DNA of 64,000 nucleotides from Octopus bimaculoides (GCF_001194135.2 NC_069005.1:11468913-11532912); one strand, 5' to 3'; shown: positions 1 to 40,297, numbered from the stretch's first letter. The notes: generated from the sequence alone by a model not told the origin. Program-made: numbers and translations.

Positions 1-311
1 ATATATATATATATACGTGTGTGTGTGTTTGCATGCATGTATACGGTGTGAGTCAATGAGAGAGGTTCTACGTGATTAGTTGATTTGAAATGCTAACCAT
101 ATCTTATCTTCCACGGTTCACTCCTTACAAGGCTTAAATAACAATGAAGTCTGTGATTTATTCCTAAAACAGAAAATAACTTTGATGTTATATTCATTTG
201 ATATTCACTTTTTATAATAAACCATCTTGCTGAGTACCCAGTTCAGACTACGACAGAAAAAATCTTGCGTTTAATTTTACAAGAGACCAATCTTTTTTGT
301 CTTTATTGTAG

Positions 312-411
312 GTTATGGTCTCAGCTTATTCCTCTAGGTTATTCCTGTTCCAGAACATTTGCGGAATCATTCAAAAAATGGGTCGAAGAAAAGGGAAAAG
401 TGCTATATTGA
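312..411 (+). CDS. Terminal exon of stanniocalcin-like secreted protein, paralog A (upstream exons outside window)
   Basis: Acceptor ccaatcttttttgtctttattgtag|G (phase 2), then LWSQLIPLGYSCSRTFAESFKKWVEEKGKVLY*. Homologous to 18646-18742. Intron phase and position and W-x9-C spacing match vertebrate STC exon 4 (R|YYNRLVRSLLEC, recalled). Confidence 0.8.
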
Positions 412-535
412 AATAACAAGGATCTGTGTATTTCGTTTCTGGAATAAAAATGAAGTTCAATGTTTGCTTAATGTTTCTAATATTTGATTTCGTATACTGA
501 ACCGTGTCACCAAATAGTAGTAGTAGTAGTAGTAG
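412..535 (+). other. 3'UTR of paralog A with AATAAA (443-448), ending in (TAG)n
   Basis: Follows the stop codon; near-identical to 18743-18870. Confidence 0.7.
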
Positions 536-1489
536 AGATCGNNNNNNNNNNNNNNNNNNNNNNNNNNNNNNNNNNNNNNNNNNNNNNNNNNNNNNNNNNN
601 NNNNNNNNNNNNNNNNNNNNNNNNNNNNNNNNNNNNNNNNNNNNNNNNNNNNNNNNNNNNNNNNNNNNNNNNNNNNNNNNNNNNNNNNNNNNNNNNNNNN
701 NNNNNNNNNNNNNNNNNNNNNNNNNNNNNNNNNNNNNNNNNNNNNNNNNNNNNNNNNNNNNNNNNNNNNNNNNNNNNNNNNNNNNNNNNNNNNNNNNNNN
801 NNNNNNNNNNNNNNNNNNNNNNNNNNNNNNNNNNNNNNNNNNNNNNNNNNNNNNNNNNNNNNNNNNNNNNNNNNNNNNNNNNNNNNNNNNNNNNNNNNNN
901 NNNNNNNNNNNNNNNNNNNNNNNNNNNNNNNNNNNNNNNNNNNNNNNNNNNNNNNNNNNNNNNNNNNNNNNNNNNNNNNNNNNNNNNNNNNNNNNNNNNN
1001 NNNNNNNNNNNNNNNNNNNNNNNNNNNNNNNNNNNNNNNNNNNNNNNNNNNNNNNNNNNNNNNNNNNNNNNNNNNNNNNNNNNNNNNNNNNNNNNNNNNN
1101 NNNNNNNNNNNNNNNNNNNNNNNNNNNNNNNNNNNNNNNNNNNNNNNNNNNNNNNNNNNNNNNNNNNNNNNNNNNNNNNNNNNNNNNNNNNNNNNNNNNN
1201 NNNNNNNNNNNNNNNNNNNNNNNNNNNNNNNNNNNNNNNNNNNNNNNNNNNNNNNNNNNNNNNNNNNNNNNNNNNNNNNNNNNNNNNNNNNNNNNNNNNN
1301 NNNNNNNNNNNNNNNNNNNNNNNNNNNNNNNNNNNNNNNNNNNNNNNNNNNNNNNNNNNNNNNNNNNNNNNNNNNNNNNNNNNNNNNNNNNNNNNNNNNN
1401 NNNNNNNNNNNNNNNNNNNNNNNNNNNNNNNNNNNNNNNNCGGCTCTGCCGGCTTACAACATAATAATAATAATAATAACAACAACAAC

Positions 1490-1660
1490 AACGTTGAAGA
1501 ATACCTTAGGAATGAGAACCCAGGTTCGAAATTTCCCTAAGACACCTGATGAAGGCTGGAGTGTATATCAGCCGAAACGTTGTGTTAATAACAAACAAGA
1601 TGAGGACAAATATCTGTCAAATGTAAATAATATAATTATTTATCAGTATAAATATTTTCC
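1490..1660 (+). mobile_element. Penelope-like element terminal-repeat fragment
   Basis: Contains CTGATGA...CCGAAACG hammerhead motif typical of Penelope-like LTRs; follows (AAT/AAC)n. Confidence 0.55.
1541..1586 (+). ncRNA. Minimal type I hammerhead ribozyme motif
   Basis: Stem I (g)ACAC/GUGU(u), core CUGAUGA plus extra A, stem II GGCUG/CAGCC, GAAA, palindromic ACGU stem III, cleavage triplet GUU. Confidence 0.6.
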
Positions 1661-2059
1661 TAAATGGAGTTAACATGCTCGCTACTTGATAGAATCATTA
1701 AATGGGTGTCTCCTCCATTAATTTATTAATCGATTGATTAATTATATGTAAATATATACATAAAAGAGTAGTATAAAACAAGAATCCAGAGAATCGTGTG
1801 GCTATTACAGTAATCTCCTACGAACTCAGCTTTCGGTTCACATAGTACTTAATTACAAATTAAAGTAATTATGCCAGTACAACTTAAAATGTAGAAGATA
1901 CGAGCTATGAATTATTCGACGAAGAACATATAAGAGTTATGGGAGTTGAACGTAGATTTGCTTAACAATATGAAATCCATACGATTACAACCGCTTCACA
2001 ACTTTCTTCTGTTGTATTAATCTCAGAGTGCAGGACTTTATATGTACAAGTTAGCATTA

Positions 2060-2160
2060 GTATTGGTTTCAAATATTGCCACAAGGCTAGAAATTTCGGG
2101 GAGCGGGGGTAAGCTGATTAGATCGTCCCCGGTGCTAAACTGATACTTTTTTTATAGACC
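2060..2160 (-). mobile_element. Fragment of the abundant tRNA-derived SINE (family 1)
   Basis: Matches 3' part of the ~210-bp unit seen at 49415-49624. Confidence 0.6.
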
Positions 2161-2311
2161 ACAGGGAAATAATTACAAGGTAGCTAAATGTTGCCTAAGT
2201 GTCCCAGCATTTAATTCCGGGATAGTAAGTCGTATTCATTTTTTTAAAAATAGGAAAATTGATCAATGAGACGAACGCTCGGGATGCTGCTTAACCATTT
2301 ATATTTTGAAG

Positions 2312-2398
2312 TCTTTTACATATGTTTCGACGGATGCACTCCACAAATGTCCGACAGGATAAATTATGGTCAACAATGCATCGATCTCATCAGGAAGG
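2312..2398 (-). ncRNA. Degenerate hammerhead ribozyme motif (Penelope-type)
   Basis: Minus strand: CUGAUGA-GAUCGAUGCA...UGCAUCCGUC-GAAAC-AUAU-GUA; stem I imperfect. Confidence 0.45.
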
Positions 2399-2889
2399 AT
2401 ATAAATAACCAACTTATCAAACAGACATGTTAACAGAAATAGAAAGTCCTATAAAACGTGACGTATTTATATTCATATACACACATGCGTACACACACTC
2501 AAATATGTGACATGTAAACAGAAACATTACATACATATAAAAACACAAACGTATATAAACGCATATGCATGCGCACGCATTAATATACATACCCATACAC
2601 ATAAACATACACATATATATACATATATACATACATATATATATATATTTACATATTATATATATCATATGTAAACATATGCATAATCATATGAATATAC
2701 ATACACTCAAGTACACATACATATATATTTTCAAATACATAGGCAGAAATATATTCACACACATATGCATATATATCTACACATATACTCGAACATATTC
2801 TCGCGGCAACGACATATAAATATACTTATGCTAAAATATGCATTTATGATCACATCCTTATTCACATAAGGAAATGGTCATTTACATAC

Positions 2890-4000
2890 ATATGTATGTT
2901 CATATCCCAAAACATCGATAGACCTTAATACATAATTGCATACTTATACACACACTTAAGCACATATACATTATTGTTCATTAAAAAAATATTTACATAC
3001 GAACAGGGGCCTCTAGGAATTTAAAATGACGTTATCCAAACAAACTAAATATTGTGAGAGAAGGAGAAGATGTGTAGAAAGGTAGGGAGCGGGAAAGAAT
3101 GGAATGATAAAACAAAGTAAAAGAGAGAGTGTGGGGGAGAGGAAGGGCAAATTGTAAATATAAAATATGCATGGAAAGAAGGGAAAGAAGGGGAGAGGGG
3201 GAAAATTATGGGAAGTAAGATGGAAGGAAAAATAAAAGAAATTTTCAGAGATTATTATGTTATGCGAAGAAATTATTTGAAAGAACAAAACAAGTGTTTA
3301 TTCAAAGAATACATTTGGAAGCTCACTCTCACTCTCATAAGCATATATAACTACACTACTTCAAATAAACAGATACACATATATGATTTAATAGACGTTT
3401 ACGATCTCCCACTTATAGATATAAGCAAACGTTCACACACATACTGAAGAGAACATATATCCCAAAACATCGACAGACACAAACACACTATAATAAACCC
3501 ATACACATACTTACTAAGCACATATACATTATTGTACACACCGAAAATATACATACGCACGATAGCAAAAACGGGTATATATGCATATATATAAATATGC
3601 ATATATATATATATATATGCATATATATATATATATATATATATATACGTATATGGAAAGCCAGGTAGTAAGGTAACTCTAGAAATCTAAAATGGTTTTA
3701 AGGAAATTAATTAGATTGAATGAGAAAAGGAGTAAACGAATAGAAAGATATGGAAATAAACGAAGAAGAAAGAGTGAATAGGAACAGGTGAATTGTATAC
3801 ATGAAAATGATAAAAAGAAAAGTAAAGAAGGGAGAGTTAAGGTTATGGAAAGTAAGGTGGAAGAATAAAGAAAGGAAAATTTGATATTATTTATTAAGAA
3901 TAAAGAAAATAAAATGATATTATTAGATTATGGGTGGATATTCTTTGGAAGAACTAACAGTGTTTCTTTCTAATGAATACATTTGTAAACTCTCTCTGTA
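2890..4000. repeat. Diverged tandem duplication (~0.6 kb unit) upstream of paralog B
   Basis: Shared blocks: atatcccaaaacatcga (~2900/~3455), taagcacatatacattattgt, ctctag(g/a)aat(t/c)taaaatg (3011/3677), gaagggagag, gaatacatttg. Confidence 0.65.
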
Positions 4001-4580
4001 AATGTGTCCACCAATTTAAGCTGAGAGAATAAAATACTGCTCTTCCGTGCACAAAGGACTGAATGATTTCTCTTTATCATAAAGAAAAGATCTAGAAAGG
4101 ATTTTCCATCCTAAAGAAAAAGATGCATTAGAGGCATTGAAGTCTCAGATTAGTTTACTGAGTCCCGTAGAGTTCTGCTTACGATTGTATTTAAAGGTAG
4201 AGGAGTGGTTAGCCAGAAGTAGACCACACACACACACACACACACATACACTTTGAATTTAAAAACAGCTGAATGTCAGTTGATGCTTTCACGATTTTTC
4301 TCCATCCCCTTCCTTTCTATCGCTGTCTGTCTATCTTTCTCTTAATTTCTCTCTCTCTCTCTCTCTCTCTTACCCTTCCAGAGTAGTGTGTATGTGTATG
4401 TAGAAGCAGACGACACACGCAAACACATACACACATGCACACACACACACACACTCATCCGAAATACTAACCAGTTGACGTCAGCTATAGCGAACGATAA
4501 AAACAATATATTGAAGAAAGAAGACATTGACAGCAGTGCATTATATTGGCATTTAAGTGGACAGAAAGAGAAAGGAAAAC

Positions 4581-4797
4581 ATGTGGAAGTACTTCATAGC
4601 TCTTTTGATATTATCGCTGTTTAAAATCGACGATGTTGCCAATCAAGACAATTTACCAAAGCCAGGCACTAAACCAGATAAAGGTAAACCAGATGACAGT
4701 AAACCAGATGAAGGTAAACCAGACAAAGCTTCTAATTTAAATGCAGCTGATCCAAGCAATCCAAGGCATCCACCAGGTCCTATTTCAACGTCAATTG
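4581..4797 (+). CDS. Exon 1 of stanniocalcin-like paralog B: signal peptide plus K-P-D repeat region
   Basis: ATG MWKYFIALLILSLFKIDDVANQ (hydrophobic signal), then KPGTKPDKGKPDDSKPDEGKPDKAS...PISTSI; donor ATTG|GTTAGT, phase 1, matches exon 2 acceptor phase. Confidence 0.8.
4671..4731 (+). repeat. Coding 15-bp tandem repeat (AAACCAGATRAAGGT-like x4) encoding KPDxx
   Basis: aaaccagataaaggt aaaccagatgacagt aaaccagatgaaggt aaaccagacaaagct. Confidence 0.85.
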
Positions 4798-6374
4798 GTT
4801 AGTTCCTTGATGTGTTGGAATGTGTGGGAATTTTTTTTTTATTAACCATTTTACTCTTTTAACTACAGAAATCAGACATGTTTACTCAGAATATTATCAT
4901 CCTTAACTGCGAGTGGCAGATTTATGTATCAATTTATCTCTTGCTTGAAGAATGTCATGGCTGAAGCTATTTTTCTCAAGTTTATCACGGCGATGTGATT
5001 TGCAGAAATACTCACCATTTTGAACAGCATTGTTGCAATCAGTGGTTGACGTATCTCATGTATCAAGCATTCAAACATCTTCATTCATGAATCCAGTTCA
5101 TAATTATCTTAGCAGAGCAAAGAGAATTACATAGTGCTATAAACGAGAAAGGGTTTGTTTCATTATAGAGATATAGCATTGCAACACTTGCGCCTTCTTT
5201 CATATTAATATGCCATTTATTAACACCATTCAGAAGTTTGAGTCTTCGCCTCTGCTGACTGTGTTGCATTGTCACTGCCTTTATTCTTTGTCATAGATCA
5301 CCGAATGTGTATTCATGACTAATGTTCTCGCATTGATGACTTTTAATCGCTGTTTTATAGAAACACAACGGTAACTTGGTTATCCCCTACATTACAGCCA
5401 TTTCTCCAATGAATTACAGTAATGTGATTTAAATATACTTAAAATATGTGACGATTCTGTTCTGATGACAATTGGTGCTGTCTTTTCAGTCCCAATGTTT
5501 ACGATTATCAGATGCTGAAGTCCATCGTGCATCAGAAGGAGGAAATCTCGCAGCCTGGCTGCTTTCATTCATCAAAGATTTCTCCCCACAAGATCTCCCA
5601 CAAGATCTCGCGTTTCGCATTTCTACTGATTTCCTTAAACCTCTGCCTTCCTACCGCTTGTTGTTTCTCTTCATTTGGTCCAGCTGTTCAGATCTTTATA
5701 TCTCAATTGCCCATGCTATTCTGACACGTCATTGCCTTGTTTTTATCGGTCCTTGTGCAACCCTATATTCTACTTATATATTGTCGTCTAATCAATTCAA
5801 AATTCTTCAGGCGATATGATATGAATAGTCATTTAACCACAAACAAAAAGGACAAAATTCCGCTTAATCGAAACTTATAAAGGAAAAAACAAATACGTAC
5901 AAATTCTCGTTCATGAAGAAATGTTAGCTAATTAGCAGTAATAGAGTGCTTGACTTTACGGAAAATTTGATGCTAAGTATTTTAATTAGGTCCCATAATC
6001 CATTGTTCCAGCTATTTGGTACATAAATGCACAACACAGAGTGCTCGACACTGTGGACGAATCAAAATCTTTTTTTTTTTTTACAAGAGATCTCTTCAAA
6101 TATATAGTGGAAAACAAGACTATATATACAGCCAGCGTCCACTAAATTCAAACATGGCAGATGCATGTGCAAGCGTCGAAGACGGAGGTTGTTTACTAAC
6201 GGAGACAGCAACTGAATACCACCTGAGGGAATACACCTATATCCCATTATACAGCTAAATTTTTGCATAATCAAATACTTGTATATATGAAGAACTAGGA
6301 TGAATAGAAACATTTCTCGTGATTAAAAACCAACTGTTCAACCTTATTCCTTCCTGTTGACTCTTCCTGATTCA

Positions 6375-6411
<37 letters not shown>

Positions 6412-6414
6412 GTT

Positions 6415-7447
6415 TTTCGCAAATAGAGTTACCATTTTTCAATCAGTTTTTTGAATGTTATGATTTTTTTCCTTTTGGCATATGGTAGCCGTTACTTTTT
6501 GCTTCCTTTAGAAGTAAATTACGCGTAGTTTTGTTTACAGCTGTTAGTTCTGTGTCAATTTTAATATGGAGTGCAAAAACGATCATTTTTGCCATATTTT
6601 GCTTTTTTCATTTCCGGAAAGGCAAGAAAGCTGCTGAAGCTCACAAAGAGATAAGAGAACTTTATGTCTCTGATTGCTTAACAGAACGTACATATCAGAA
6701 ATGGTTTTCAGAATTCCGCTCTGGAGATTTTTCACTCAAAGATGATAACGTTCTGTTCGACATACTGAAGTTGATGACGACCGAATGAAAGCCATAGTTA
6801 AAACTTATTGTCATATAATCGTGCGAGAGATTGCGGAGTGGTTAAATGTATCACATACAATCAATTGAAAATCACTTAAAATTTCTTGGACTCGTTAAGA
6901 AGATCGATATTTGATTTCCAAATAAATTGAAAGAGATTCACTTAACACAACAAATCAATATTTGTGATATGTATCTCAAACGCAATGAAATCGATTTTTT
7001 TGAAACGAATCATCGCTGGTGAGGAACAATGGATTTTCTATAATAACATCAATCGAAAACGATCATGGACCAAGCGTAATGAACCAGCACAAACCACATC
7101 GAAAGCTGAATTGCATCAAAAAAAGGTCATGCTGTCATTTGGTGGGATTACAAAGGTGTTGTGTATTTTTGAGCTGCTTCCAAGGAACCAAACAATCAAT
7201 TCAGATGCTTACTGGCAACAACTAATGAAACGAGAGGAAGTAATCAAAGAAAAACGGCCAGAATTGGCAAATCGTAAAGGAATCGTGTTCCACCATGACA
7301 ACGCTAGACCACACACGTCTTAGCTAACTCGTGAAAAATTATCGGAGTTTGGTTGGGAAGTGATGTAACATCCACCATATAGCCATGATCTTGCACCATC
7401 AGATTACCATTTATTTGGAAGTTTGCAAAATACTTTGAATGGTAAAG
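6415..7447 (+). mobile_element. mariner (DD34D-type) transposase pseudogene, truncated by gap
   Basis: EQWIFYNNINRKRSW, KKVMLS, VFHHDNARPHTS, HPPYSHDLAPSDYHLF motifs with frameshifts and stops. Confidence 0.9.
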
Positions 7448-8609
7448 NNNNNNNNNNNNNNNNNNNNNNNNNNNNNNNNNNNNNNNNNNNNNNNNNNNNN
7501 NNNNNNNNNNNNNNNNNNNNNNNNNNNNNNNNNNNNNNNNNNNNNNNNNNNNNNNNNNNNNNNNNNNNNNNNNNNNNNNNNNNNNNNNNNNNNNNNNNNN
7601 NNNNNNNNNNNNNNNNNNNNNNNNNNNNNNNNNNNNNNNNNNNNNNNNNNNNNNNNNNNNNNNNNNNNNNNNNNNNNNNNNNNNNNNNNNNNNNNNNNNN
7701 NNNNNNNNNNNNNNNNNNNNNNNNNNNNNNNNNNNNNNNNNNNNNNNNNNNNNNNNNNNNNNNNNNNNNNNNNNNNNNNNNNNNNNNNNNNNNNNNNNNN
7801 NNNNNNNNNNNNNNNNNNNNNNNNNNNNNNNNNNNNNNNNNNNNNNNNNNNNNNNNNNNNNNNNNNNNNNNNNNNNNNNNNNNNNNNNNNNNNNNNNNNN
7901 NNNNNNNNNNNNNNNNNNNNNNNNNNNNNNNNNNNNNNNNNNNNNNNNNNNNNNNNNNNNNNNNNNNNNNNNNNNNNNNNNNNNNNNNNNNNNNNNNNNN
8001 NTATATATATATATATATATATATATAATGATTGCTTCATTTTGACAGATGATAGCCGTCCCATCAACACACTCACCACACCCTCTCAGAAACATTCCGT
8101 TGCTGAGCCCTCAGATCACTTAAGACCAGCTACTGACTGATGGTGTTTGAAATACAAGTGACAGATATTTAAAACACAACTGACAGATGTAGAAGTTTCT
8201 TCTACATCTTTACCGGTTGGAATCTGATTCTGAAAGATTCTTTTTGTGAATTAGCATATGTCTTTTAAAACCAGATATTGTCTTTGCAAATTTTGTGACA
8301 TATGACACAAAGTCGTAAGAGACGGTTATGGTTCAAAACGTTTACCTACTTGGGCATTTTAATTCATGTGACGTCAGATGATTCACATATCCTGCTTTTG
8401 ACATCAGAACACCACTACCAACACTACCAACAACAGCAACAATAGCAGCATCAGCAGTATCAGCAGCAAAAGCAACATTATCAACAATAAAAAAACGATA
8501 CATAACAAAGTCCATAACAATAACAATAACAACATCTGCAGTGACATCTACAACAACAACGGCCATAATCACACATTTACTAAGAGCTTTTTGTTTCTCT
8601 ATTTCTTAG

Positions 8610-8758
8610 GTTCTCAACAACGAGTAGCTGAATGCTATTCTCTTGTTCGAAAGTTGGACTGCAAATTCTACACATGTTTGAGTGAGAGATTAATTTGCCC
8701 TCAAACACTATTAGCGAAGGAAAAGCCTAATGTTTATTGTAAAGGACCCGATGAAAAG
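8610..8758 (+). CDS. Exon 2 of stanniocalcin-like paralog B (Cys-rich)
   Basis: Acceptor ttgtttctctatttcttag|GT (phase 1): GSQQRVAECYSLVRKLDCKFYTCLSERLICPQTLLAKEKPNVYCKGPDEK|GTAAAA (phase 0). C-x8-C-x4-C-L spacing as in STC1 CLNSALQVGCGAFACL; 149 nt versus ~143 nt recalled for STC exon 2. Confidence 0.85.
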
Positions 8759-8850
8759 GTAAAATGATTTTTTATGCTTTTTATGGTGTGGCAATTTAAA
8801 GTTCTGATTGAATGAGCGAAGAAATAGAATGACAGAATGAGTAAAACAAG

Positions 8851-8910
<60 letters not shown>

Positions 8911-9438
8911 TAAAAGATACGAGTTTTCATCAGGGTGACTTAAATTAATAGATATGCACTCTGAGTGCTCAATTTGGTGTGTCATCAAAATTCCAGTTTG
9001 AACTGCTGTTGAACATGCGATTTTGTTACTGCCTTGCTGAAACGGCTAGAATTTATTATTAATTATTGATAATATTTTCGGGATAATTTTCGAATTGAAA
9101 CGCCGGCAGTTTTTATTTACTGCTGACAAGGAGAAGCGCTTGCGTGGTAGATTTGAAAAATTAGAATGTATAAGCACGGGCGTATACTGGATTTCCTCGT
9201 GTATATATGTTTAATGTAGGTGTATCTGCTGAAGAAGACTTCGCCTAGCAAATTATTTTATTTGCTAAAGTAAGTCTGAAACCATGGTCCAGGAGTTAGA
9301 TGGTAAATGTTTTTATTTTTCATTCCTATCGACGTTTTATCCCTAATAGTGGTTTGAAACATAGCTGTTCTTTCTAGCGTGCAAGGAATCCTATGATGGA
9401 TCCCTCTTATATGTTTAAATGTACACTGTATTTATATG

Positions 9439-9509
<71 letters not shown>

Positions 9510-9635
9510 TAGATCCACATATCTTCATAATATTGTTTCATTAGGTCAATGCTGATGAACTAGACTACAACATGGCGTTGTTGAAGAGTTACAATTTTGA
9601 GCAGATGCATATTAAACCAACAATATTTTCAAACC

Positions 9636-10018
9636 GTGGAGGCGCAATGGTCCAGTGGTTAGGGCAGCGGACTCGCGGTCATAGGATCGCGGTTTCGATT
9701 CGCAGACCGGGCGTTGTGAGTGTTTATTGAGCGAAAACATCTAAAGCTCCACGAGGCTCCGGCAGAGGTTAGTGGCGAACCCTGCTGTACTCTTTCACCA
9801 CAACCTTCTCTCTCTCTTTCTTCCTGTTTCTGTTGTACCTGTATTTCAAAGGGTCAGCTTTGTCACGTTGAATATCCCCGAGGTCTACATTAATGGTACA
9901 CATGTCTGTGGAGTGCTCAGCCACTTGCACGTTAATTTCACGAGCAGGCTGTTCCGTTGATCGAATCAACTGGAACCCTCGACGTCGTAAGCGACGGAGT
10001 GCCAACAACAACAACAAT
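9636..10018 (+). mobile_element. tRNA-derived SINE (family 2) with (ACA)n tail
   Basis: A/B-box head ggcgcaatggtccagtggttag...ggtttcgattc; body shared with 31070-31375, 42130-42400 and 52751-53050; ends gccaacaacaacaac. Confidence 0.8.
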
Positions 10019-10304
10019 TTTAAAACCATATAAATCTATATAAAAAATATAAATGTACATAAAAATACATGCGTATATAAATGTATATAAAAATGTATGC
10101 GCAATTGAGTATAAATATTATTAAAGTCTAAACATTAAAAAGCATCTGACGATGGTTTCACGGACATTACTGCCTCCACAATGTAATCAAAATAGATAAG
10201 CATACTGGCAATAATTCCACTCTTCGGAGATGCATGGAGTTATTATATACGTGTTAAAAACGAATGGTATATATAATAAGATGATATTAATTAAAATATT
10301 AAAA

Positions 10305-10874
10305 TGTATACTGTGTATACTGGGGAAAAGGTTCTTCTCTCTATCTGGTGGGATTGCAAAGGAGTAATTCACTTTCAATTGTTACCACCTAATGCAACAA
10401 TCAATGCTCAAGTCTACTGTCAGCAATTAGAGCGTTTGAACCAAGCTTTGAAGAAAAAAAAGGCTTGCTTTAGTGAATCGAAAAGGAGTGATGTTTCATC
10501 AGGACAATGCGCGAGCCCACACTGCAAAGATCACATCACAGAACATCGAAGAGCTTGGTTGGCACAAAATTCCTCATCCACCTTATTCTCCCGACATTGC
10601 TCTTTCAGACTACCATTTGTTTCATAGTTTACAAGATCATTTGGGGGACATAACTTTCGCAAGCTAGGAGGAGGTCGAAACCAACATTTAAGAGTTCTTC
10701 GCCTTGAAACCAAAAGAGTTTTACATTGATGGAATTAAAAAGCTTGTAAATAGATGGAAGGAAATCATAGATAATCAAGGAAAGTACATTGATGATTAAA
10801 TTTCAATTACATATAACATCTGATCACTTGTTTTCTTTATTCAAAATTCGGACAAAACTTACGAGATGACCTGA
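10305..10874 (+). mobile_element. mariner 3' half with right TIR
   Basis: WWDCKGVIHF, FHQDNARAHT, HPPYSPDIALSDYHLF; ends ...acgagatgacctga|TA. Confidence 0.9.
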
Positions 10875-11176
10875 TATTTGGTCGATAAAATAAACTGCAC
10901 TTCAAATACTATAGTTGATGGCATTGATTAACGCTCTACCACAAGATTATTGGTCTTGTGTCTAAGTTGGAAGTCATTCTAACAATTAATAACCTTTTTA
11001 TTTTTTTATTTTTTAACCTCCTACCAACTTGCCCAAATCAGCCAATCTGCCAAAGGGTTTAATCTGATTTCTTATGCAATTTCTGAAAAACAATTTTGTA
11101 ATCTTCAATTATTGTAATCGATGAAAAAATATTCGATGTAAATTGGGTTAATAGATTCATTATTATTATTAATTAT

Positions 11177-11213
<37 letters not shown>

Positions 11214-12360
11214 GCGCGCGCACGCACACACACACNNNNNNNNNNNNNNNNNNNNNNNNNNNNNNNNNNNNNNNNNNNNNNNNNNNNNNNNNNNNNNNNN
11301 NNNNNNNNNNNNNNNNNNNNNNNNNNNNNNNNNNNNNNNNNNNNNNNNNNNNNNNNNNNNNNNNNNNNNNNNNNNNNNNNNNNNNNNNNNNNNNNNNNNN
11401 NNNNNNNNNNNNNNNNNNNNNNNNNNNNNNNNNNNNNNNNNNNNNNNNNNNNNNNNNNNNNNNNNNNNNNNNNNNNNNNNNNNNNNNNNNNNNNNNNNNN
11501 NNNNNNNNNNNNNNNNNNNNNNNNNNNNNNNNNNNNNNNNNNNNNNNNNNNNNNNNNNNNNNNNNNNNNNNNNNNNNNNNNNNNNNNNNNNNNNNNNNNN
11601 NNNNNNNNNNNNNNNNNNNNNNNNNNNNNNNNNNNNNNNNNNNNNNNNNNNNNNNNNNNNNNNNNNNNNNNNNNNNNNNNNNNNNNNNNNNNNNNNNNNN
11701 NNNNNNNNNNNNNNNTTGTTATTGTTATTGGCGTTATGTCACTCCAGTCCAGCTGTGATCAAACAAACACCTTTATGGCGTTCGAGTAGTCGATTGGACG
11801 ACATGTCTTGACAAATAGTTAAATTGTTTCGGATATCTAGATGGATATTTAATTCGATGACACACAATAAAGCACCACCTTCCACATGCAGTGACCCGAT
11901 GAATCGTTGTTCGGCAATTTGTGCTCGTTAGTGTCCAGATGTTTCCCTGTACACTCGCAGATTCTGTACACTTGCAGATGTCCACAACAGTGTCAGGTGA
12001 GACGAGACAGATTTGGTCAGAATGTCGAAACTGACAAGTGCAAGGTAGTTTTTACATCGATGTTACTTCCGCTTGATTACAAACGAAATTTAAGACATTA
12101 TCATCGTAAGTTCTCCGTAAAACAAACGATGCTGAGTTAATCTTTATAAACATTTTACTAATTATTATCAACATATTACTAAATTAATAAGTATACTAAT
12201 GATAATAATTGCATGCGTTTAAAACATGTCAATTGTAATTATTGGCTTATATTAAAAAAGAAGGCATTTACTGGAGGCTATACCGCGCTTTCAAACTCCA
12301 CTCCACAAGCTGATGGCAACCTGATGTGATTTGCGAATAATCTTACCATAGTAAAATGTA

Positions 12361-12584
12361 CGGAATATGAGACAACTGAAAAGTTCCTGGATTTAAGTGT
12401 ATCGCGAAAGACCTAGTTGGAAGCCCAACCTTCCGAGTTCTTTTACATAAGTTAGAAAAACTGAAGGACTGCTGCAGTAAGTGTGTGAATGTGAGAGGAG
12501 AAAATGTAGTATAAAATCATAATTAACTGATCCTCCAGTATTTTCTTTTACCCGAAAGCCAGGAACTTCTCAGTATCCCACCGT
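12361..12584. mobile_element. mariner-derived MITE-like element
   Basis: Terminal inverted sequences actgaaaagttcctgg ... ccaggaacttctcagt. Confidence 0.6.
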
Positions 12585-12619
12585 GTGTATGTATATATAT
12601 ATATATATGTATATATAGT

Positions 12620-14550
12620 GAGAATTTTCAAAAGAAAAACAAAAGACGAAGACGGGTGTGTAAACAACAAACAGATATATTAGTTTAACACTCGGGAAGT
12701 GAAAAAGTCTTTTGCGTTTCGAGCCTATGCTCTTCGACAGAAATAAACAGGGAGAGAAAATAAAAAAGGTTTTGTCGCTATATAAAATACTATATAACCT
12801 TTATATATTACATAATCTATATGTATATAGATTAAAGATACTGTTGTAATAAAAGTCACAAAAAGCACAAGTCACCTGGACAAAATATTAATTTATTTCG
12901 CTATTAATCAAGCTGTTACAACGAACAAGCCGGTTTAGTAACTGCGGGAAAATACACATTTAGAAAAAGACAGAAAGAAACACAAGGAAGATAATTAACC
13001 TCACAGTAAATATAACCAGTGTCTTACAAGTGTTACAATTACATAAACCACACTGAAATGGTTTATGATGTGTCCGGTAGTTTATCATTAATTTCTGATA
13101 AGGTGCATTTTCTAAAATGCAGACATAAAGGAAAAATCTTGACCCTGGTATTTACTCAGTCGCTGGAGAGTCTTAAGCTTTTTAAACGATACAACAGTTT
13201 TTCTAGTGCGCATATGGGATATGTTTTGATCTGTTAATATAAGGGTAGTCATAGAAGAAAATCTTCCATTTTGGGGTTTCCAATGGTGGTCGACAAATCA
13301 CACTGAAAAAAAAAACAACTGTGAAATGAAAATAGTAAAAAAATGGAAATGTGATTTACAGTTTTTCTGATCCTCTTCTAATAGACGCTTTCGCTTGAAG
13401 TGGTATGTTTTGGGATCTGATGAATTTATAATTCTTTTCCGCAAGCGGATCTGATTTTTGATTCGTTAAAATTCTGGTCACGTTTTCTTTCCGTGGTCAA
13501 GCTTGTCGTTCTGCTTGCTTGGTTTCCTTGTGGATACGGTCATAAGTCGTTCTGGCTGGTTGGTTCTCTTAAAGAGTCATTTCGTTGTATTCGTTGAAGT
13601 TCGGCTTTGATTGGTCTTCAGTTAGGTGATGTCAGCAACTGGTGTTTGTAGAATTTCATTGGACTGGAGGTGGGTGACGTCAGCAGTTGATGTTTGTATG
13701 GTTATTTGGAGTTGCGGTTTCGGAACCCAGGTGGAAGATTCTTACTGAAGTTTTCAGAAAAAATTTTTTTCTTGTTCCTGGTTTCTTTGTTAGTCTTTTT
13801 TCTTTTCTTTTTAATGCTTTTTCTTCTTTCCAAAGGATATTCAGCTGTGGTTTATATTTTTTAATCAGTATGTTTTCCTAATTGAAACGGAATTGGGTTG
13901 AACTGTTTCCAGTGCATCGATAGAGAGGGAAGATTTGGTATTTAGGGTTTATGTCTACGGGGCATTGATGTAGGTAATTGCTTACAGGAATTTTCCTAGT
14001 GGTGAGGTCCCAGATTTGTTGCCTGTGTACCGTAAGTCTATCCCTCAAAGTGAAGCTGGTTTGACCAATGTAATAACCACCACAACCTCCATATTTAAGA
14101 ACATAAATTAAGTTCTTCGAAGCACAGGTGAAGTCATATTTTATGGCAAAAGTTTGACCTGACTTACATTTGTATGTGGAGCTCTGTAAGAGGAAGATGC
14201 AAGTTCTGCAGTTAGGGCGGTTGCATTTTTGACTTTTGGGGTTGTATTTTTGGTGGGTAATTTGGCACTGGTGAGTAATTTTTCTAGGGATTGCGGTTGT
14301 CTCTTGCTTTTAATAATCCTATGTGTTTCTAGTGCCTTTTTCATTCGTGGGTCCTTCATAAGGAGGGATATGTTTTAGTGGGTGATGTTGTATGCTTCCA
14401 TGTTTCTTGGATTGTTGATACGTAAGATAGAGTTTTAAGTGTCATGGTGTCTTCTTGTTTTCCGTAACTCTTGGATGTATATCATTTTTGCACGTTCTAT
14501 TCCATTTTTGATTAGACTGGTTGGGTATTTTCTATCTAGTAATGTATTTT
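12620..14550 (-). mobile_element. Penelope-like retroelement remnant (RT C-terminal region plus GIY-YIG endonuclease, terminal repeat)
   Basis: Minus strand: IIKSKRQPQSLEKLLTSAK and FTCASKNLIYVLKYGGCGGYYIGQTSFTLRDRLTVHRQQI (GIY-YIG); hammerhead-like terminal motif at ~12708-12745. Confidence 0.8.
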
Positions 14551-14551
14551 T

Positions 14552-14778
14552 TAAAGAATTTGACCTCTATGAAAGTTCGATAGATCTGTCATTTTAATGA
14601 ATTTTAATTACCTTTTTCTAATGATATCTGAAAATAAACAGCAATTTTAGCAAAATATATTAAGCAACACTAATAACAAATCAAAAGACACAAGAATAAA
14701 GCTTTTGACGGTTTTATATATATTTCAAAATTATGATGCTATGATGTTAGCTGTTTCTATTCTTTTCTCCAACACCTG
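14552..14778 (-). mobile_element. Inverted 5' fragment of a Tc1-like element
   Basis: Reverse complement matches 14815-15040 including TIR-like end, 5'UTR and ATGACAGATCTATCG start; ends CTG|TA. Confidence 0.85.
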
Positions 14779-14814
14779 TATATATACCTCTCTCTATATA
14801 TATGCATATACATA

Positions 14815-16048
14815 CAGGGGTTGGACAAAATAATAGAAGCACTTAGTATCATAGAATCATAATTTTGAAATATCTATAAAACCGTCAAAAGCTTGTTTAT
14901 TTTTATGCTTTTTGATTTATTATTAGTGTTGCTTAATATCTTTTGCTAAAATTGCTGTTTCTTTTCAGATATCATTAGAAAAAGGTAATTAAAATTCATT
15001 AAAATGACAGATCTATCGGACTTTCATACAGGTCAAATACTTGGTACTCGTATGGCAGGTGCTAACGTAACAAAAACAACCGAAATGTTTGATGTATCAA
15101 GAAGTACTGTCTCGAGAGTAATGACAACCTTTAAGAAAGAAGGAAAAACTTTCTTGTCGAAACAAAACTCTGGAAGAGAACCAAAATTTTCAGATAAGAA
15201 CCGTCGGACTCTTACGCGAATTGTTAGAAAAGTACAGCTCCCAAAATTACGGCAGAGCTTAATGACCACTTCGAGAACCCAGTTTCCACAAAAACTGTTA
15301 GCTACACGAAGCCAGATTTCACAGGAGTGCTACAATCAGAAAATCACGACTTTTGAAAACAAACGTTGCAAAGCATTTAGAGTGGAGTAAAAACCTGCAG
15401 AATTGGTCCCAGAGCAGTAGAAGTATGTTATTTTCTCAGAAGAGTCATCCTTTACCATATTTCCGACCACCGGCCGAGTATATGTGTGGAGATAAGCAAA
15501 AGAAGCATTTGACCCAGCCTACCTTATTCCAACCACTAAACATGGAGGATAATCTGTGATGATCTGGAGGTATATATCTTGGAAATCCACCTGCCCAATA
15601 GTTTTCCTTCATGGCAGAATTAATAGTCAAGACTATTTAAGCATTTTATATGATCAAATTCGTCCGATGGTTTCCTATCTGTTTCCGGAGGGAAACGCAA
15701 TCTTTCAGGATGATAATGCACCAATTCACAACGCTAAAGTTGTTACTGAATGGCACGAGAAACATTCTAGTGAAGTTGAACATCTTATCTGGCCACCACA
15801 GTCTCCAGATCTCAATATTATTGAACATTTATGGTACATTTTAGAAAAACAAGTAAGGAGTCAATATCCTCCACCATCATCACTACAAGACCTGGAGATT
15901 GTATTAGCTGAAGAATGGACAAAACTTTGTTTGGGAACAATTCAAACTTTGTACGAGTCCATACCTCGTAGAATTCAAGCTGTAATTACTGCGAAAGGCG
16001 GTCCTACCTCATATTAAATTAAATTTGTCTTAAATTTTAAGGTGTTTC
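14815..16048 (+). mobile_element. Tc1-like (DD34E-type) element with frameshifted transposase, right TIR entering gap
   Basis: TA|CAGGGGTTGGACAAAA TIR; MTDLSDFHTGQILG...SGREPKFS; FQDDNAPIH, WPPQSPDLNIIEHLW, KGGPTSY*. Confidence 0.92.
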
Positions 16049-16206
16049 NNNNNNNNNNNNNNNNNNNNNNNNNNNNNNNNNNNNNNNNNNNNNNNNNNNN
16101 NNNNNNNNNNNNNNNNNNNNNNNNNNNNNNNNNNNNNNNNNNNNNNNNNNNNNNNNNNNNNNNNNNNNNNNNNNNNNNNNNNNNNNNNNNNNNNNNNNNN
16201 NNNNNN

Positions 16207-16850
16207 ATATATATACATGCTTTGGTTTTTCTCAGGCGAGATAAATTTCTGCCAGGATGAGATGGTGAAGACACAGAACTACCGTTGTCTAGAAGTGTCC
16301 CCAAAACATGTGCCCGCATGGCCACAGACTCAACATGGAGGCCTACACTTAATGCCTGGAGGAGGTAGTGCTGCTCTGGTTCAACAGGTGGCTGCTTGAA
16401 GACCCTATGTCTGGCAATGAGAATCTGCACCATGCCACACAACCAAGATAACCCAGTCATGGCTGTCAGACAATTTCTCCGACCACATCACCCCTAACAT
16501 GTGTCTACCTAAGACCCGACTACAACCCTCTTGATAATTATGTGTCGGGTGCAGTTGCGTAAGAGACTGTCAAAACTTCTTGTCATACTAAAGATGAAAC
16601 GAAAGCAAGGATTATGGCAGCATTCACCAACTTAAACAATGACACCGTTCAGAAGAGTTGCAGGATATTCCGAAGTCGTCTGGATGCCACGGTGGAAGCC
16701 AATGGCAATTTAATTGAATAGATTTACTCTTTAGTATTCCAAGATATTTTTAATGTAATTTTGGTAAACGTATCTGCCAAAATGTGATGTCAGCGTTATT
16801 TTCCATTTTTGCGTAAATTAGAAGGCAATTTATTCACCGACCGCACGCTG
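16207..16850 (+). mobile_element. maT/DD37D-like Tc1-mariner remnant
   Basis: Homologous to 58167-59048 (cccagtcatggctgtcagacaa, catcacccctaacat, gaagccaatggcaattt); right end ...gctg|TA. Confidence 0.7.
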
Positions 16851-18645
16851 TACATATATATATATGCATATGCAACTCGGGTGTTAGGAAATACCTACAT
16901 TGCTAGAAATAAGAGCTAAACCACTCTAAAGCTATACTTAATGCGCATATACAGTAATGGGGACCTTAATCGTTCTAAAAGTGCAGATCGAGGATTCTTA
17001 ATATTGACGCGACAGTTTAGGCAATTTCCTTTGCTTCGTCAGTTAAGACAGCCAACTTCGGCTCCTTCTGGATTGCCATTAGTATGTATGCTTTCGTCAT
17101 TCAAATAATTGGATGATTTAACGATTCGTTAATGTGTTTATACAAAATTAATATAAACAGCAGTTTGCAATGTTTCACGAAAAAGGAAAACTACAAATGT
17201 CACTGAATTCGACTAGGGTGTTAGGAAACACCTACATTGCTTGAAATAAGAACTGAACCGCTCTAAAAATGTGACAAAGGGTGCAAGGAATACCAAAATT
17301 GCTAGAAATAAGAGTCAAAGAACCCTTTAGCCACAAAAGCACACTTTTATTTACTGACAGACGAGAGGACCTCCCCACTGCAATTGAGTGACATTAAATT
17401 GGCATGGCAGTTTTGCATGAAATTTAATGCCCATCAGCATTGTTCAGAGTGGCGAAGGTGATTTCTACTCTGTCAGTAGATTGATAAATTTTACCATAAA
17501 TATCAGTGGCTAATTTCGCAAAGTGGTAATGTGAAAAGTATAAAATAAGTAAGGTGACTAGACGCAATTCAAGACCAAAAAGGAAATAATTCAGCGTCAC
17601 TAAAACGACGAAGGGTGCAGAAATAAGAGTCAAAGAACTCATCGACGGCCGTTTCACGGGTACAATGAATGTATGAATAGCGTTTTAAGTATTCAAAATA
17701 CATAAACATAATGCCCTTCTCATCAGATTGGCTTCCTTTGTGATGAAATCCTACATGGTTATAATTCGATAGATTAAAAAATGATGATATCCCTTACCTG
17801 AATTTAGCCGAATCTATATATTTAATTTATCTACCAATTGATCTACCTTATTTGCCCCTGAATTTTTAAATTTTGAACTCTCATCCGACATTTCGTATAA
17901 ACATCAAATTCTGAAGCGATTCGACCAATTCCTTTTGGATGCCCTTTCCTCGAATTTTTATCTCTTTATTTGTCACTCCTACACTCGGTACCTGAACCCA
18001 ACGTACATGATCATAGTTTTCACATATGACTTTTACATGTAATCTTCTTTACTGATTTATAAATTTATATATATANNNNNNNNNNNNNNNNNNNNNNNNN
18101 NNNNNNNNNNNNNNNNNNNNNNNNNNNNNNNNNNNNNNNNNNNNNNNNNNNNNNNNNNNNNNNNNNNNNNNNNNNNNNNNNNNNNNNNNNNNNNNNNNNN
18201 NNNNNNNNNNNNNNNNNNNNNNNNNNNNNNNNNNNNNNNNNNNNNNNNNNNNNNNNNNNNNNNNNNNNNNNNNNNNNNNNNNNNNNNNNNNNNNNNNNNN
18301 NNNNNNNNNNNNNNNNNNNNNNNNNNNNNNNNNNNNNNNNNNNNNNNNNNNNNNNNNNNNNNNNNNNNNNNNNNNNNNNNNNNNNNNNNNNNNNNNNNNN
18401 NNNNNNNNNNNNNNNNNNNNNNNNNNNNNNNNNNNNNNNNNNNNNNNNNNNNNNNNNNNNNNNNNNNNNNNNNNNNNNNNNNNNNNNNNNNNNNNNNNNN
18501 NNNNNNNNNNNNNNNNNNNNNNNNNNNNNNNNNNNNNNNNNNNNNNNNNNNNNNNNNNAAAATAACCATCTAAGGGATAGAAGTATCCATTACACTACCG
18601 GTATATTACTTATATTTAATCCAATCTTTTTTATCTTTATTGAAG

Positions 18646-18742
18646 GCTATGGGGTAATATTTCTGATGTAGCCGCAAACTGTTCAACAGACACTTCGGGA
18701 AAATTCCATAAATGGCTCAAGGAACAGCAAAGTTTGCCATAA
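18646..18742 (+). CDS. Terminal exon of stanniocalcin-like paralog B
   Basis: Acceptor ccaatcttttttatctttattgaag|G (phase 2): LWGNISDVAANCSTDTSGKFHKWLKEQQSLP*; aligns with 312-411 and with STC YYNRLVRSLLECDEDT. Assignment to the same gene as exons 1-2 is inferred from order and strand. Confidence 0.8.
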
Positions 18743-18857
18743 ATGAACTAACAAGTATCTGTGTATTTCGTTTCTGAAATAGAAATAAAGTTCAATGATT
18801 GCTTAATGTTTCTAATATTTGATTTAGTTACTGAACCGTGTCACCAAATAGTAGTAA

Positions 18858-18898
<41 letters not shown>

Positions 18899-18900: not shown

Positions 18901-19282
18901 GGTGTGGGTAAAAGTAGGTATACAGTTGCTTGACCAAGCATTCACTCTATGTCCTCAGAAATCATAAAAACTCGGCTTCCGATGAACTCAGTATCTCCAG
19001 TAATCGTTAGATTTAAAAATGATGATTCCCTTTACCTGAATTTAGACGAATCTGTATATAATTAATTTATCTACCAATTGATCTACCTTATTTGCCCCTA
19101 AATTTTTAAATTTTGAACTCTCATCTGACATTTCGTATAAACATCAAATTCTTAAGCGATTCAAACAGTTCCTTTTGGAAGCCCTTACTTCGAATTTGGG
19201 TTAAAAATTAAGAGAAATTGAGAAAAGAAAAGTACATTCCATTTATATTAAGCAACTATAAACCTACTTTTCCCCCACTCTT

Positions 19283-31375: not shown

Positions 31376-32816
31376 GTCATACACACACACGCATTCACGC
31401 ATACACACACACACACACTCATCCATCCATCCATCCATCCATCCGTCCGCCCGTCCGTCCGTCCATCCATCCATACATACATACATATATACATATAAGC
31501 ATACATACACACGTACATATACATACATGATACAGACATACAGACATCTAGAATCATAGCTATCATATTATGTAAGGAGAGTTAATAAAACATCATGTGA
31601 TAAATGTTTAGTTTTAAATTTTAGAATAGGCTCATGACATAAGACAAGTAAATCTGTACTTACTTAACTATACTGCAATCATTTTTGAGAACTTGAAGCT
31701 ATTAAAGCAATTAGTTTTGATCTACAGTTTCGCATGTCATCAGCTGGCCCTTTTCATCATGGACAGTGCAGCGTTCATAAAACTGACAGTAAATACCCAA
31801 CGAAAGCTTCACATAGCATTCAACAGGTCATCGCCGAAGGGGAGAGAAATAGCTGCCATCCATAAATAAAAGGTTTTTTTTTTACTTATGATATACATAT
31901 TTTTTATCCTGTTAAAATTTTCAGTTTTATTGACATCATATTTCTATAGGAAGAAAAGAAAGGCAAAAAACATTAAAAGTATGAGAGTTTAAATTATCGA
32001 GAAAACAAAATCCCACGTAACTACTTCACCTATGAAAAAGAAACAAAAAGGTGCAGGATTAAGCAGCAAAAAATGGTGGGGGATGAGTTAAATTTCGCTT
32101 TATTTTTATTGTGGATAGGTTTTTTCTACCAAGATATCAACCGTAATAACAAGTTCAAAGATTCCTTAATTTTATTCTGCATTTTAGTCTATTGTGTAAG
32201 CCATGTTTATGATCTTTCAATAAAACGAAAGCTTACCTCTTCGCTAGACATTCACTTCTTTTATCTACAGGGTGTCCACAAAGCTTGGGTACATGGCGGA
32301 TTAACACATACTTTAAGAAATTATTATTTCTTATATTCAATTGTTTATGTTATGATTTTATTTACTCCAGATACCCAGACTCCATGTAAATAGAGGATCT
32401 ATGTCAGACTTTCTGTATGTATCCCTAATACTAGTAACTTATAATTTATTATGCATAACCCTACTTTGTATAGATTATTAGTCTTGTTCGAATATATAAA
32501 CTTACAATTAGTCTTTGAGTAACTGTATATCTTTTGACAGTTTAAATTGAAAATGGTTTGAGTAAGCGTACTTGATAAATTTAATCGTGGAAATAAGGTT
32601 CAGCAAAGCGGACTCGAAAGGAATATGTATGTATGTCATTGTTCAGTTTTATTTCAAGATTTCTTAGCAATAGAGAAAGAGCTGGTTTCTAAAAGGTAAA
32701 TACAAATATATTTATATACGTTTCTATATTCAACTGGAGTACATATCATGTGTCATTTCCTATGACACTCTAGGGATTCTGCCAGTTTGCTGCATATTTA
32801 GTGAGTTTTTGTTAAA

Positions 32817-32898
32817 TTCATCATGGCCATGTGGTTAAAACAGTGGACTAGAAATCCATTATGGTTTCCCCGCATAGGTTCAAATCTTACTTGTAATA
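32817..32898 (+). pseudogene. tRNA-Ser(AGA)-derived pseudogene
   Basis: ggcc-atgtggttaa...tggactAGAaatccatt..ggtttccccgc..aggttcaaatc matches eukaryotic tRNA-Ser(AGA); acceptor stem broken. Confidence 0.75.
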
Positions 32899-33312
32899 AG
32901 AAACAAATAATACTTCAGAATATATATTTTTACTCCAGAATATCTATGTTTATTTTTAACTTGTTTCATTTACTGAACTGCAGTCATGTTGGGGCACAGC
33001 CTTCAAGGGTTTAGTCAAAAAAATCAAATGACTCAAGTACTTATTCTTTTGCTGCACTCCTAAGATACTGGGATGTAGATAAACCAACACCAGTTGTCAA
33101 GTGGTGGTGGTGGACAAACAGTAAGACAAAGACATATGCACAAAAATCCATACATACATGCATTACTTATATATATTCATATATATATATATATATATAT
33201 ANNNNNNNNNNNNNNNNNNNNNNNNNNNNNNNNNNNNNNNNNNNNNNNNNNNNNNNNNNNNNNNNNNNNNNNNNNNNNNNNNNNNNNNNNNNNNNNNNNN
33301 NNNNNNNNNNNN

Positions 33313-34912: not shown

Positions 34913-35271
34913 CAGTATCTCACAGAAGTATGTACACCCCTAAAATATTTCAGGAAAATTGCCATCACTCTGATAATATCAAGGGAAATCAAACAAAATT
35001 TATGTTGATTAAAAGTATATTATACATGCTAACATTACACAAATTTGGAACATAAAGCAATAAACATTTTTAAAGATATAAACGAAATATTTATTTTCAA
35101 ACGTTACAAAAATATGTACACCCTAAATGAGAATTTGCCATATTCATTATTTCTTCCAGATATTGTTGATAATTTCAATTCTAATAAATTATTTATTTTC
35201 AAACGTTACAAAAATATGTACACCCTAAATGAGAATTTGCCATATTCATTATTTCTTCCAGATATTGTTGA
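34913..35271 (+). mobile_element. Left end (TIR plus 5' region) of a Tc1 element
   Basis: TA|CAGTATCTCACAGAAGTATGTACACCCC; same family as the right TIR at 23020-23113. Confidence 0.8.
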
Positions 35272-40072: not shown

Positions 40073-40215
40073 AAAGAGTGAGAAATGGAAAAAGGTAAAT
40101 ACAAATATATTTATGTACATTTTTATATTCAACTGGAGTAAATACCGTGTGTCATTTCCTATGACACTCTAGGGATTCTGCCAGTTTGCTGCCTATTTAG
40201 TGAGTTTTAGTTAAA

Positions 40216-40297
40216 TTCATCATGGCCATGTGGTTAAAGCAGTGGACTAGAAATCCATTATGGTCTCCCCACATAGGTTCAAATCCTACTTGTAATA
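40216..40297 (+). pseudogene. tRNA-Ser(AGA)-derived pseudogene, second copy
   Basis: ggccatgtggttaaagcagtggactAGAaatccattatggtctccccacataggttcaaatcctac; lies in a ~500-bp block duplicated from 32690-33200. Confidence 0.75.

Follow-up and report, generated by a model that had tools for sequence, protein, structure and literature searches.

How a gene that appears to be built on a hormone fold can change its coding sequence several times faster than the non-coding DNA on either side of it is the question raised by a locus of Octopus bimaculoides. The window analyzed, 64,000 nucleotides (nt) long, comes from chromosome CM046625.1 (about 11,468,913-11,532,912 of GCA_001194135.2) and contains two versions, A and B, of one short terminal coding exon. 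Copy B belongs to the gene LOC128250785, and copy A lies near the start of the window. An initial annotation, made from the sequence alone, had described the coding part of the two copies as far more diverged than its flanks, and had suggested that they may be secreted effectors built on a stanniocalcin (STC) fold, in toxin-like accelerated evolution. The orthologous locus of Octopus vulgaris (L002), which has no gaps and is collinear with positions 1517-18864 of the window, was used for comparison. Both O. bimaculoides copies are accelerated in the coding sequence only, mostly by amino-acid-changing substitutions, at several times the rate of the flanks and whatever rooting is assumed.

Divergence of the two terminal exons

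The terminal open reading frames (ORFs) of A and B are present where they had been placed, and the frame read in the initial annotation is the only one open from acceptor to stop in both copies. The coding exons align without gaps, with 52/93 nt identical (53/94 with the split-codon base; 54/96 in the initial annotation) and, as counted before, 8/31 amino acids (aa). The eight identical residues, L, W, C, S, F, K, W and E, are those listed earlier as an L-W, C-S and F-x-K-W scaffold plus one E. Identity by codon position is 12, 17 and 23 of 31, within one or two of the earlier 13, 18 and 23 of 32. The third position is therefore the most conserved, and it holds too few of the differences (8/41, hypergeometric p=0.010). 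The coding parts are nevertheless still homologous, as 52/93 identity compares with about 28% expected (p=1.5e-8).

The flanks are much more similar. The last 25 nt of the intron are identical at 23/25 positions, and after the stop codon 7 mismatches and 1-2 single-base indels were found in about 109-116 nt (about 94% identical), which bears out the earlier counts of 2 differences in the 25 intron nt and about 7 in a 3' untranslated region (UTR) of about 109 nt. Mismatches amount to 41/93 (44%) in the coding part and 9/134 (7%) in the flanks (Fisher p=2.4e-11). The divergent block starts 7 nt after the acceptor and its 3' limit is the stop codon, within 2 nt of the end of the coding sequence (CDS). 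The contrast on which the initial annotation was built is thus real and matches the limits of the CDS; overall, change in the coding letters is about tenfold that in the neighboring DNA. Over 31 codons, nonsynonymous divergence (dN) is about 0.80 and synonymous divergence (dS) 0.21-0.30, giving a dN/dS of 2.6-3.8.

The homologous segment is limited to 287-535 and 18621-18869, and neither of the two stretches compared is broken by an assembly gap. The homology of copy A to B and to O. vulgaris begins abruptly at 287, and 5' of this point no significant similarity was detected (shuffle p=0.40 and 0.13); in the intron of copy B, homology to O. vulgaris extends farther upstream, at 90%. The window contains no third copy of the terminal exon. 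The conserved 3' UTR flank matched no Rfam family, and its folding is not unusual (z=0.24).

Three-way comparison with O. vulgaris

In the 93 coding nt, 41 differences were counted between A and B, 32 between A and O. vulgaris, and 24 between B and O. vulgaris. In the 116 nt after the stop codon the corresponding numbers are 7, 14 and 16, and in the 25 intron nt they are 2, 2 and 2. Each variable site was then assigned to the sequence that differs from the other two. The branch of A received 22 coding changes (8, 9 and 5 by codon position, in 93 nt) and 4 flank changes in 147 nt (p=5e-7), and the branch of B 14 coding changes (8, 4 and 2, that is, 12 at positions 1-2) and 6 flank changes (p=0.004). 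On the O. vulgaris branch, 5 coding changes (0, 0 and 5) and 13 flank changes do not differ significantly; its exon 4 has changed slowly, at third positions only. The branch proportions differ between coding sequence and flanks (heterogeneity chi-square p=0.0005), which excludes an equal acceleration of the exon on every branch.

The same direction is seen without copy A. Between B and O. vulgaris, exon 4 diverges by 26% in the coding part and by 13% in the flanks, with a dN/dS of 0.6-0.8. The UTR diverges by 14%, not much more than non-coding DNA in this region generally (10.9%), which indicates that the UTR of B is a true orthologue under no special constraint. This non-coding yardstick consists of 3570 nt of alignable collinear blocks, including a dead Tc1 element (L002 18250-19142, 10.9% mismatches) that is common to both species and must therefore have been inserted before they split.

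The contrast extends over the rest of the gene. Nucleotide identity between the two species is 77% in exon 1, 82% in exon 2 and 74% in exon 4, against 86-92% in the adjacent introns and UTR; exon 2 retains 67% aa identity, and the introns flanking it 87-90% nt identity. Coding sequence is the faster in all three comparable exons (1, 2 and 4), and the pooled CDS divergence is 21.9% vs 10.9% for the non-coding nt (p=6e-10). For the orthologous CDS, dN is 0.19, dS 0.24-0.27 and omega (dN/dS) 0.73-0.80; dN is higher than the distance of about 0.12 measured in non-coding DNA (p=0.003). Base composition does not explain the contrast, as non-coding blocks of 39-43% G+C diverge by only 8-11%.

Gene structure of LOC128250785

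The exon 1 ORF (4581-4797) is a 100% match to both isoforms, X1 and X2, of the NCBI entry 'uncharacterized protein LOC128250785'. Its N-terminus, MWKYFIALLILSLF..., is hydrophobic, conserved in O. vulgaris, and looks like a signal peptide. Both isoforms read past the donor of exon 2 to 8767 (8759-8767), which adds 'VK' and a stop codon. The NCBI model goes no further than exon 2, since exon 3 falls into the assembly gap 11236-11715; the sequence on either side of this gap (10950-11235 and 11716-12015) can be aligned with L002 16038-16318 and 16726-17026. The public O. vulgaris model, CAI9741012.1, has 75 aa and contains exon 1 only, owing to donor read-through at L002 10224-10228.

In the O. 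vulgaris locus, four exons of 223, 149, 227 and 97 nt join in frame into an ORF of 231 aa; their splice sites are canonical (AG/GT), and the intron phases are 1, 0 and 2. Of the 10 cysteines encoded, exon 2 contributes 5, exon 3 another 4 and exon 4 the tenth. Copy B is exon 4 of LOC128250785, and the annotation is short only through the gap at exon 3. A candidate for exon 3 within the window (12383-12476, 'KCIAKDLV...') was rejected: it is a repeat, also found at 27304-27197, has no pyrimidine tract and does not fit in phase. A long (CA)n/(CT)n microsatellite at L002 16290-16400 lies just 5' of O. vulgaris exon 3, and is probably the reason why the short-read assembly of O. bimaculoides broke here and lost the exon.

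An exhaustive HMMER search with the LOC128250785 protein found a single relative, CAI9741012.1; among 1.84 billion representative proteins and in a second collection, only its own isoform and this O. vulgaris exon 1 model were matched, with no detectable paralogue. The O. vulgaris locus contains no copy resembling A within 10 kb upstream of the gene, and no second copy in the 20 kb examined.

Two variable features of the gene may be added. The Lys/Pro/Asp-rich repeat of exon 1 (4581-4797, L002 10001-10223) differs in length between the species by 12- and 6-nt indels, and isoform X2 skips 28 residues by means of an internal GTAAAC donor.

Membership in the stanniocalcin family

The reading of an STC fold holds for what appears to be a very divergent member of the family. 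The Pfam Stanniocalcin profile PF03298 has a gathering cut-off of 23 bits. The whole O. vulgaris protein scores 21.0 bits (E=2.4e-4), under this cut-off, and exon 3 alone 20.6 bits, but exons 3 and 4 together score 24.0 bits (E=2.9e-5) in one collinear stretch across the junction (profile positions 90-177 of 200). Since exon 4 raises the match, the terminal exon would be part of the stanniocalcin core; exon 2 contributes nothing to the score. The pieces found in the window itself (exons 1 and 2; exon 2 joined to exon 4) gave no Pfam match because exon 3 is missing. The best three PDB sequence matches are all stanniocalcin-2, with weak E-values of 0.17-0.44; the exon 3 cysteines align column for column with the STC2 chains 8a7e and 8a7d, as does an 'ECYL' motif, without gaps.

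The O. vulgaris model has ten cysteines with the spacing typical of the family, and four exons, the last of which starts just before the final conserved cysteine. It thus resembles the family of PF03298, which includes vertebrate STC1 and STC2 (solved STC2-PAPP-A complexes 8a7e, 8a7d and 7y5q), in its ten cysteines, its predicted secretion and its exon 3 cysteine spacing. The cysteine spacing of exon 2 appears to match that of human STC1. Stanniocalcin genes also have four coding exons; the middle exons have 149 and 227 nt in octopus, and 143 and 212 nt in human STC1. A tblastn search of the window with an unverified human STC1 sequence found no significant match, and in a Pfam search of plus-strand ORF pieces of at least 28 aa from 1441-18750 only mariner and Tc1 transposases were recognized.

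In other respects the octopus gene departs from the family. It has a long Lys/Pro/Asp-rich spacer after the putative signal peptide, and no long C-terminal tail. Hormone stanniocalcins evolve slowly, whereas the octopus protein has only about 60% aa identity between two species of Octopus.

Origin of the two copies

The explanation preferred here, which is given about an even chance of being correct, is that a divergent stanniocalcin-like gene has its last coding exon represented twice, as A and B, and that this exon was copied as a cassette in O. bimaculoides and diversified in both places afterwards. The unit copied within the O. bimaculoides lineage would have been 250 bp long, made up of the exon, its 3' flank and 25 nt of intron, and would have arisen either by a small duplication or by B-to-A conversion of the whole piece. 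On a scale that runs back from the present to the separation from O. vulgaris, the event would lie at about 40%, because the flanks differ by 6% between A and B and by 14% between the species. Both copies would then have taken amino-acid-changing substitutions 5-8 times faster than the flanks changed, with the cysteine, two tryptophans and a few other scaffold residues retained throughout. The most likely driver, by analogy with other fast-evolving secreted families on a cysteine scaffold, would be diversifying selection on the exposed C-terminal residues of what would be a secreted ligand or effector.

Several observations weigh against this explanation. Taken alone, the comparison of dN with dS between A and B is borderline (about 36/73 nonsynonymous vs 5/20 synonymous changes, p about 0.07 by our estimate), and the rates rest on 31 codons and three sequences in all. 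The dS of 0.2-0.3 exceeds the flank divergence of 0.07, which is unexpected for a clean recent duplication. Between the species, dN/dS is below 1, so that classical positive selection is not demonstrated there, and the differences are spread evenly over the codon positions (24, 18 and 23), which relaxed constraint together with a raised local mutation rate would fit equally well. Finally, no upstream exons for copy A are visible on its 541-bp contig, which lies between two gaps, has an unconfirmed placement and may be an orphan fragment; and the terminal peptides of A and B, joined as a query, had no match in a collection of 5.8 billion proteins. The proposal of toxin-like accelerated evolution is supported in part.

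The excess of synonymous over flank divergence would be accommodated if A and B were old paralogues that predate the species split, their flanks having been homogenized by recent B-to-A conversion while the coding part escaped, or while converted alleles were selected against. In coding sequence B and O. vulgaris are indeed nearer to each other (24/93 differences) than B is to A (41/93), with A, at 32/93 from O. vulgaris, as the outlier expected for the topology (A,(B,O)); the intron of A beyond -25 is also without detectable homology. Conversion restricted to the UTR, which the initial annotation had offered as its alternative, is however weakened by the need for two separate tracts, of 32 nt and at least 125 nt, one with its inner end no more than 7 nt from the acceptor, the other with its inner end exactly at the stop codon. 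The upstream 10 kb in O. vulgaris hold no orthologue of A, third positions of A and B are 74% identical although the intron cannot be aligned, and an acceleration of B is still required (14 changes, 12 of them at positions 1-2, vs 5 in O. vulgaris). This history is possible but doubtful. Hypermutation focused on exons, or relaxed constraint, seems unlikely; in this case the mutation rate of the gene's exons would be about double that of the DNA around them, whatever the codon position, and selection would guard the Cys/Trp scaffold only. Raised synonymous rates are reported for the mature-toxin region of conopeptides, and the even spread over codon positions, the orthologue dS and dN, both above the non-coding 0.12 at an omega of about 0.75, and the failure of G+C content to explain the contrast are all in its favor. 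It leaves the A-B dN/dS above 2.5 unexplained and does not agree with an O. vulgaris exon 4 that has only its 5 third-position changes, against 22 in A and 14 in B that fall mostly at positions 1-2; moreover, a yardstick drawn from alignable blocks only may understate the neutral rate.

Copy A might also be no working exon at this place, being either a small contig that was mis-scaffolded or the dead remains of a single exon, perhaps mosaic or copied from a paralogue situated elsewhere; the A-B contrast would then reveal little about a pair of tandem genes. Its 541-bp island has microsatellites at its edges and lies between N runs of 4812 and 899, and besides the missing upstream exons it has no counterpart in the syntenic region of O. 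vulgaris and a peptide contained in no annotated protein. Neutral drift, however, would diverge coding sequence and flanks equally, and 22/93 vs 4/147 changes were observed; despite 32 changes, copy A keeps its open frame, acceptor AG, cysteine and both tryptophans (p about 0.007 under drift); and the comparison of B with O. vulgaris gives the faster coding sequence without A. We consider a misplaced or dead copy A quite unlikely. At the improbable end of the ideas considered here is an exon-targeted diversification, as proposed for conopeptides, in which synonymous and nonsynonymous sites of every coding exon would change about twice as fast as the introns next to them, and 250-bp cassettes of one exon with its splice site and UTR would be copied and diversify in bursts.

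Comparison with venom systems

Conopeptide genes and those of snake-venom PLA2 combine a hypervariable mature region with conservation of the introns, the UTRs and the part for the signal peptide. The octopus locus is similar in several respects: between A and B the coding part is more diverged than intron and UTR with the cysteine scaffold kept, dN is greater than dS (2.6-3.8), and synonymous sites are also faster than the flanks. Unlike in these venom genes, the octopus orthologues have a dN/dS below 1 and show no special conservation of the exon for the putative signal peptide (77% nt). Only one gene and one orphan exon were found in the window, and no expanded tandem family came into view when 20 kb of O. 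vulgaris and the 1.84 billion representative proteins were included.

Stanniocalcin 'doppelganger toxins', termed SF5, are reported from two octopods, O. bimaculoides and Hapalochlaena maculosa, in whose posterior salivary glands they occur, in a 2026 preprint, where they were identified by BLASTp against stanniocalcin (Koch et al., bioRxiv 10.64898/2026.02.02.703354). LOC128250785 is from the same species and would belong to the same fold class. The identification of the SF5 toxins by BLASTp suggests that they are less divergent than LOC128250785; positive or diversifying selection is not mentioned in the text of the preprint. A role of LOC128250785 in venom or saliva is a reasonable lead from the literature and no finding. 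The gene reads as a fast-evolving, predicted secreted protein that carries a cysteine scaffold on a hormone fold.

Features of the window

The window is AT-rich, with many microsatellites and 20 N runs. Gaps were checked against the gapless O. vulgaris locus. The gap of 4812 N ends directly before the start of the window, which leaves copy A on its island; in the 608 nt 5' of that gap only repeat-like sequence and no stanniocalcin-like exon was found, a 177-nt stretch of it matching the O. vulgaris locus and a repeat family of the window. The main features are collected in Table 1.

Table 1. Coordinates of exon copies, gene parts and assembly gaps (window positions unless marked L002, the O. 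vulgaris locus)
Feature	Position	Strand	Description
Copy A, intron end	287..311	+	last 25 nt; polypyrimidine tract; acceptor AG 310-311; matches both B and O. vulgaris at 23/25
Copy A, putative terminal coding exon	312..411	+	1 split-codon base, LWSQLIPLGYSCSRTFAESFKKWVEEKGKVLY, stop TGA 409-411
Copy A, 3' UTR and downstream flank	412..541	+	AATAAA 443-448; ends in (TAG)n run at gap 542-1440
Gap	542-1440		899 N; severs downstream flank of copy A at (TAG)n run
LOC128250785 exon 1, CDS	4581..4797	+	hydrophobic N-terminus, then Lys/Pro/Asp-rich repeats; donor G/GTTAGT, phase 1
Gap	7448-8001		within intron 1; adjoins mariner remnant
LOC128250785 exon 2	8610..8758	+	five Cys, C-x8-C-x4-C-x6-C-x13-C; ends AAG/GTAAAA, phase 0
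Gap	11236-11715		hides exon 3; both flanks collinear with L002; 480 N vs 407 nt there
Gap	16049-16206		within intron 3, collinear with L002; 158 N vs 107 nt
Gap	18076-18558		upstream of exon 4, in DNA found only in O. bimaculoides
Copy B, intron 3 end	18621..18645	+	last 25 nt; acceptor AG 18644-18645
Copy B, exon 4, terminal exon of LOC128250785	18646..18742	+	1 split-codon base, LWGNISDVAANCSTDTSGKFHKWLKEQQSLP, stop TAA 18740-18742
Copy B, 3' UTR and downstream flank	18743..18898	+	AATAAA at 18784; ends in (TAG)n run
O. vulgaris exon 3	L002 16457-16683		227 nt; acceptor ttttttcag/, donor /gtaagt; four Cys, C-x15-C-x13-C-x6-C
O. vulgaris exon 4	L002 20009-20105		collinear orthologue of copy B; phase 2 fits exon 3

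Exon 4 contains N-glycosylation sequons, NIS/NLS and NCS, in B (18656-18664 and 18677-18685) and in O. vulgaris; both are absent from copy A, which has QLI and SCS in their place. From 55 nt 5' of exon 4, O. bimaculoides carries about 1.3 kb of DNA (17268-18590, including a gap) in addition to what is found in O. vulgaris. A direct repeat of 192 bp (17766-17957 and 19004-19197, 90.7% identical) brackets copy B; an extra copy of exon 4, as this repeat would predict, was sought at 17300-17760 and is not there.

The introns contain two Mos1-type mariner remnants (about 6500-7447 and 10295-10815) and one Tc1-type transposase remnant (15004-16047). ORFs at 33300-34700 resemble fragments of a LINE-type reverse transcriptase, and a 486-bp repeat at 32691-33176 recurs at 40090-40598 with 86% identity. 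Two pairs of neighboring stretches, 37227-37393 with 37405-37571 (100% identical, across a gap of 10 N) and 35085-35169 with 35187-35271 (98.8%), have the appearance of assembly artefacts in which the ends of contigs were duplicated. An ORF listing over the other 45 kb of the window yielded nothing but repeats and pieces of transposons, and no further stanniocalcin-like exon.

Implications

Two public gene models are corrected by this work, NCBI LOC128250785 and O. vulgaris CAI9741012.1, both of which are short by splice-donor read-through. The corrected model defines what appears to be a divergent, octopus-lineage secreted protein of stanniocalcin-like type. If diversification were indeed targeted to exons, with the copying of exon cassettes, it would represent a mechanism generating effector variety in cephalopods. 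Should the gene be among the SF5 toxins, it would provide the first genomic evidence of the regime of conserved flanks and hypervariable coding sequence that is seen in cone snails and snakes, and its C-terminal segment would be a candidate surface for contact with the target. Should it stand outside SF5, it would still be a clear case of a gene with a hormone fold that has been freed from constraint.

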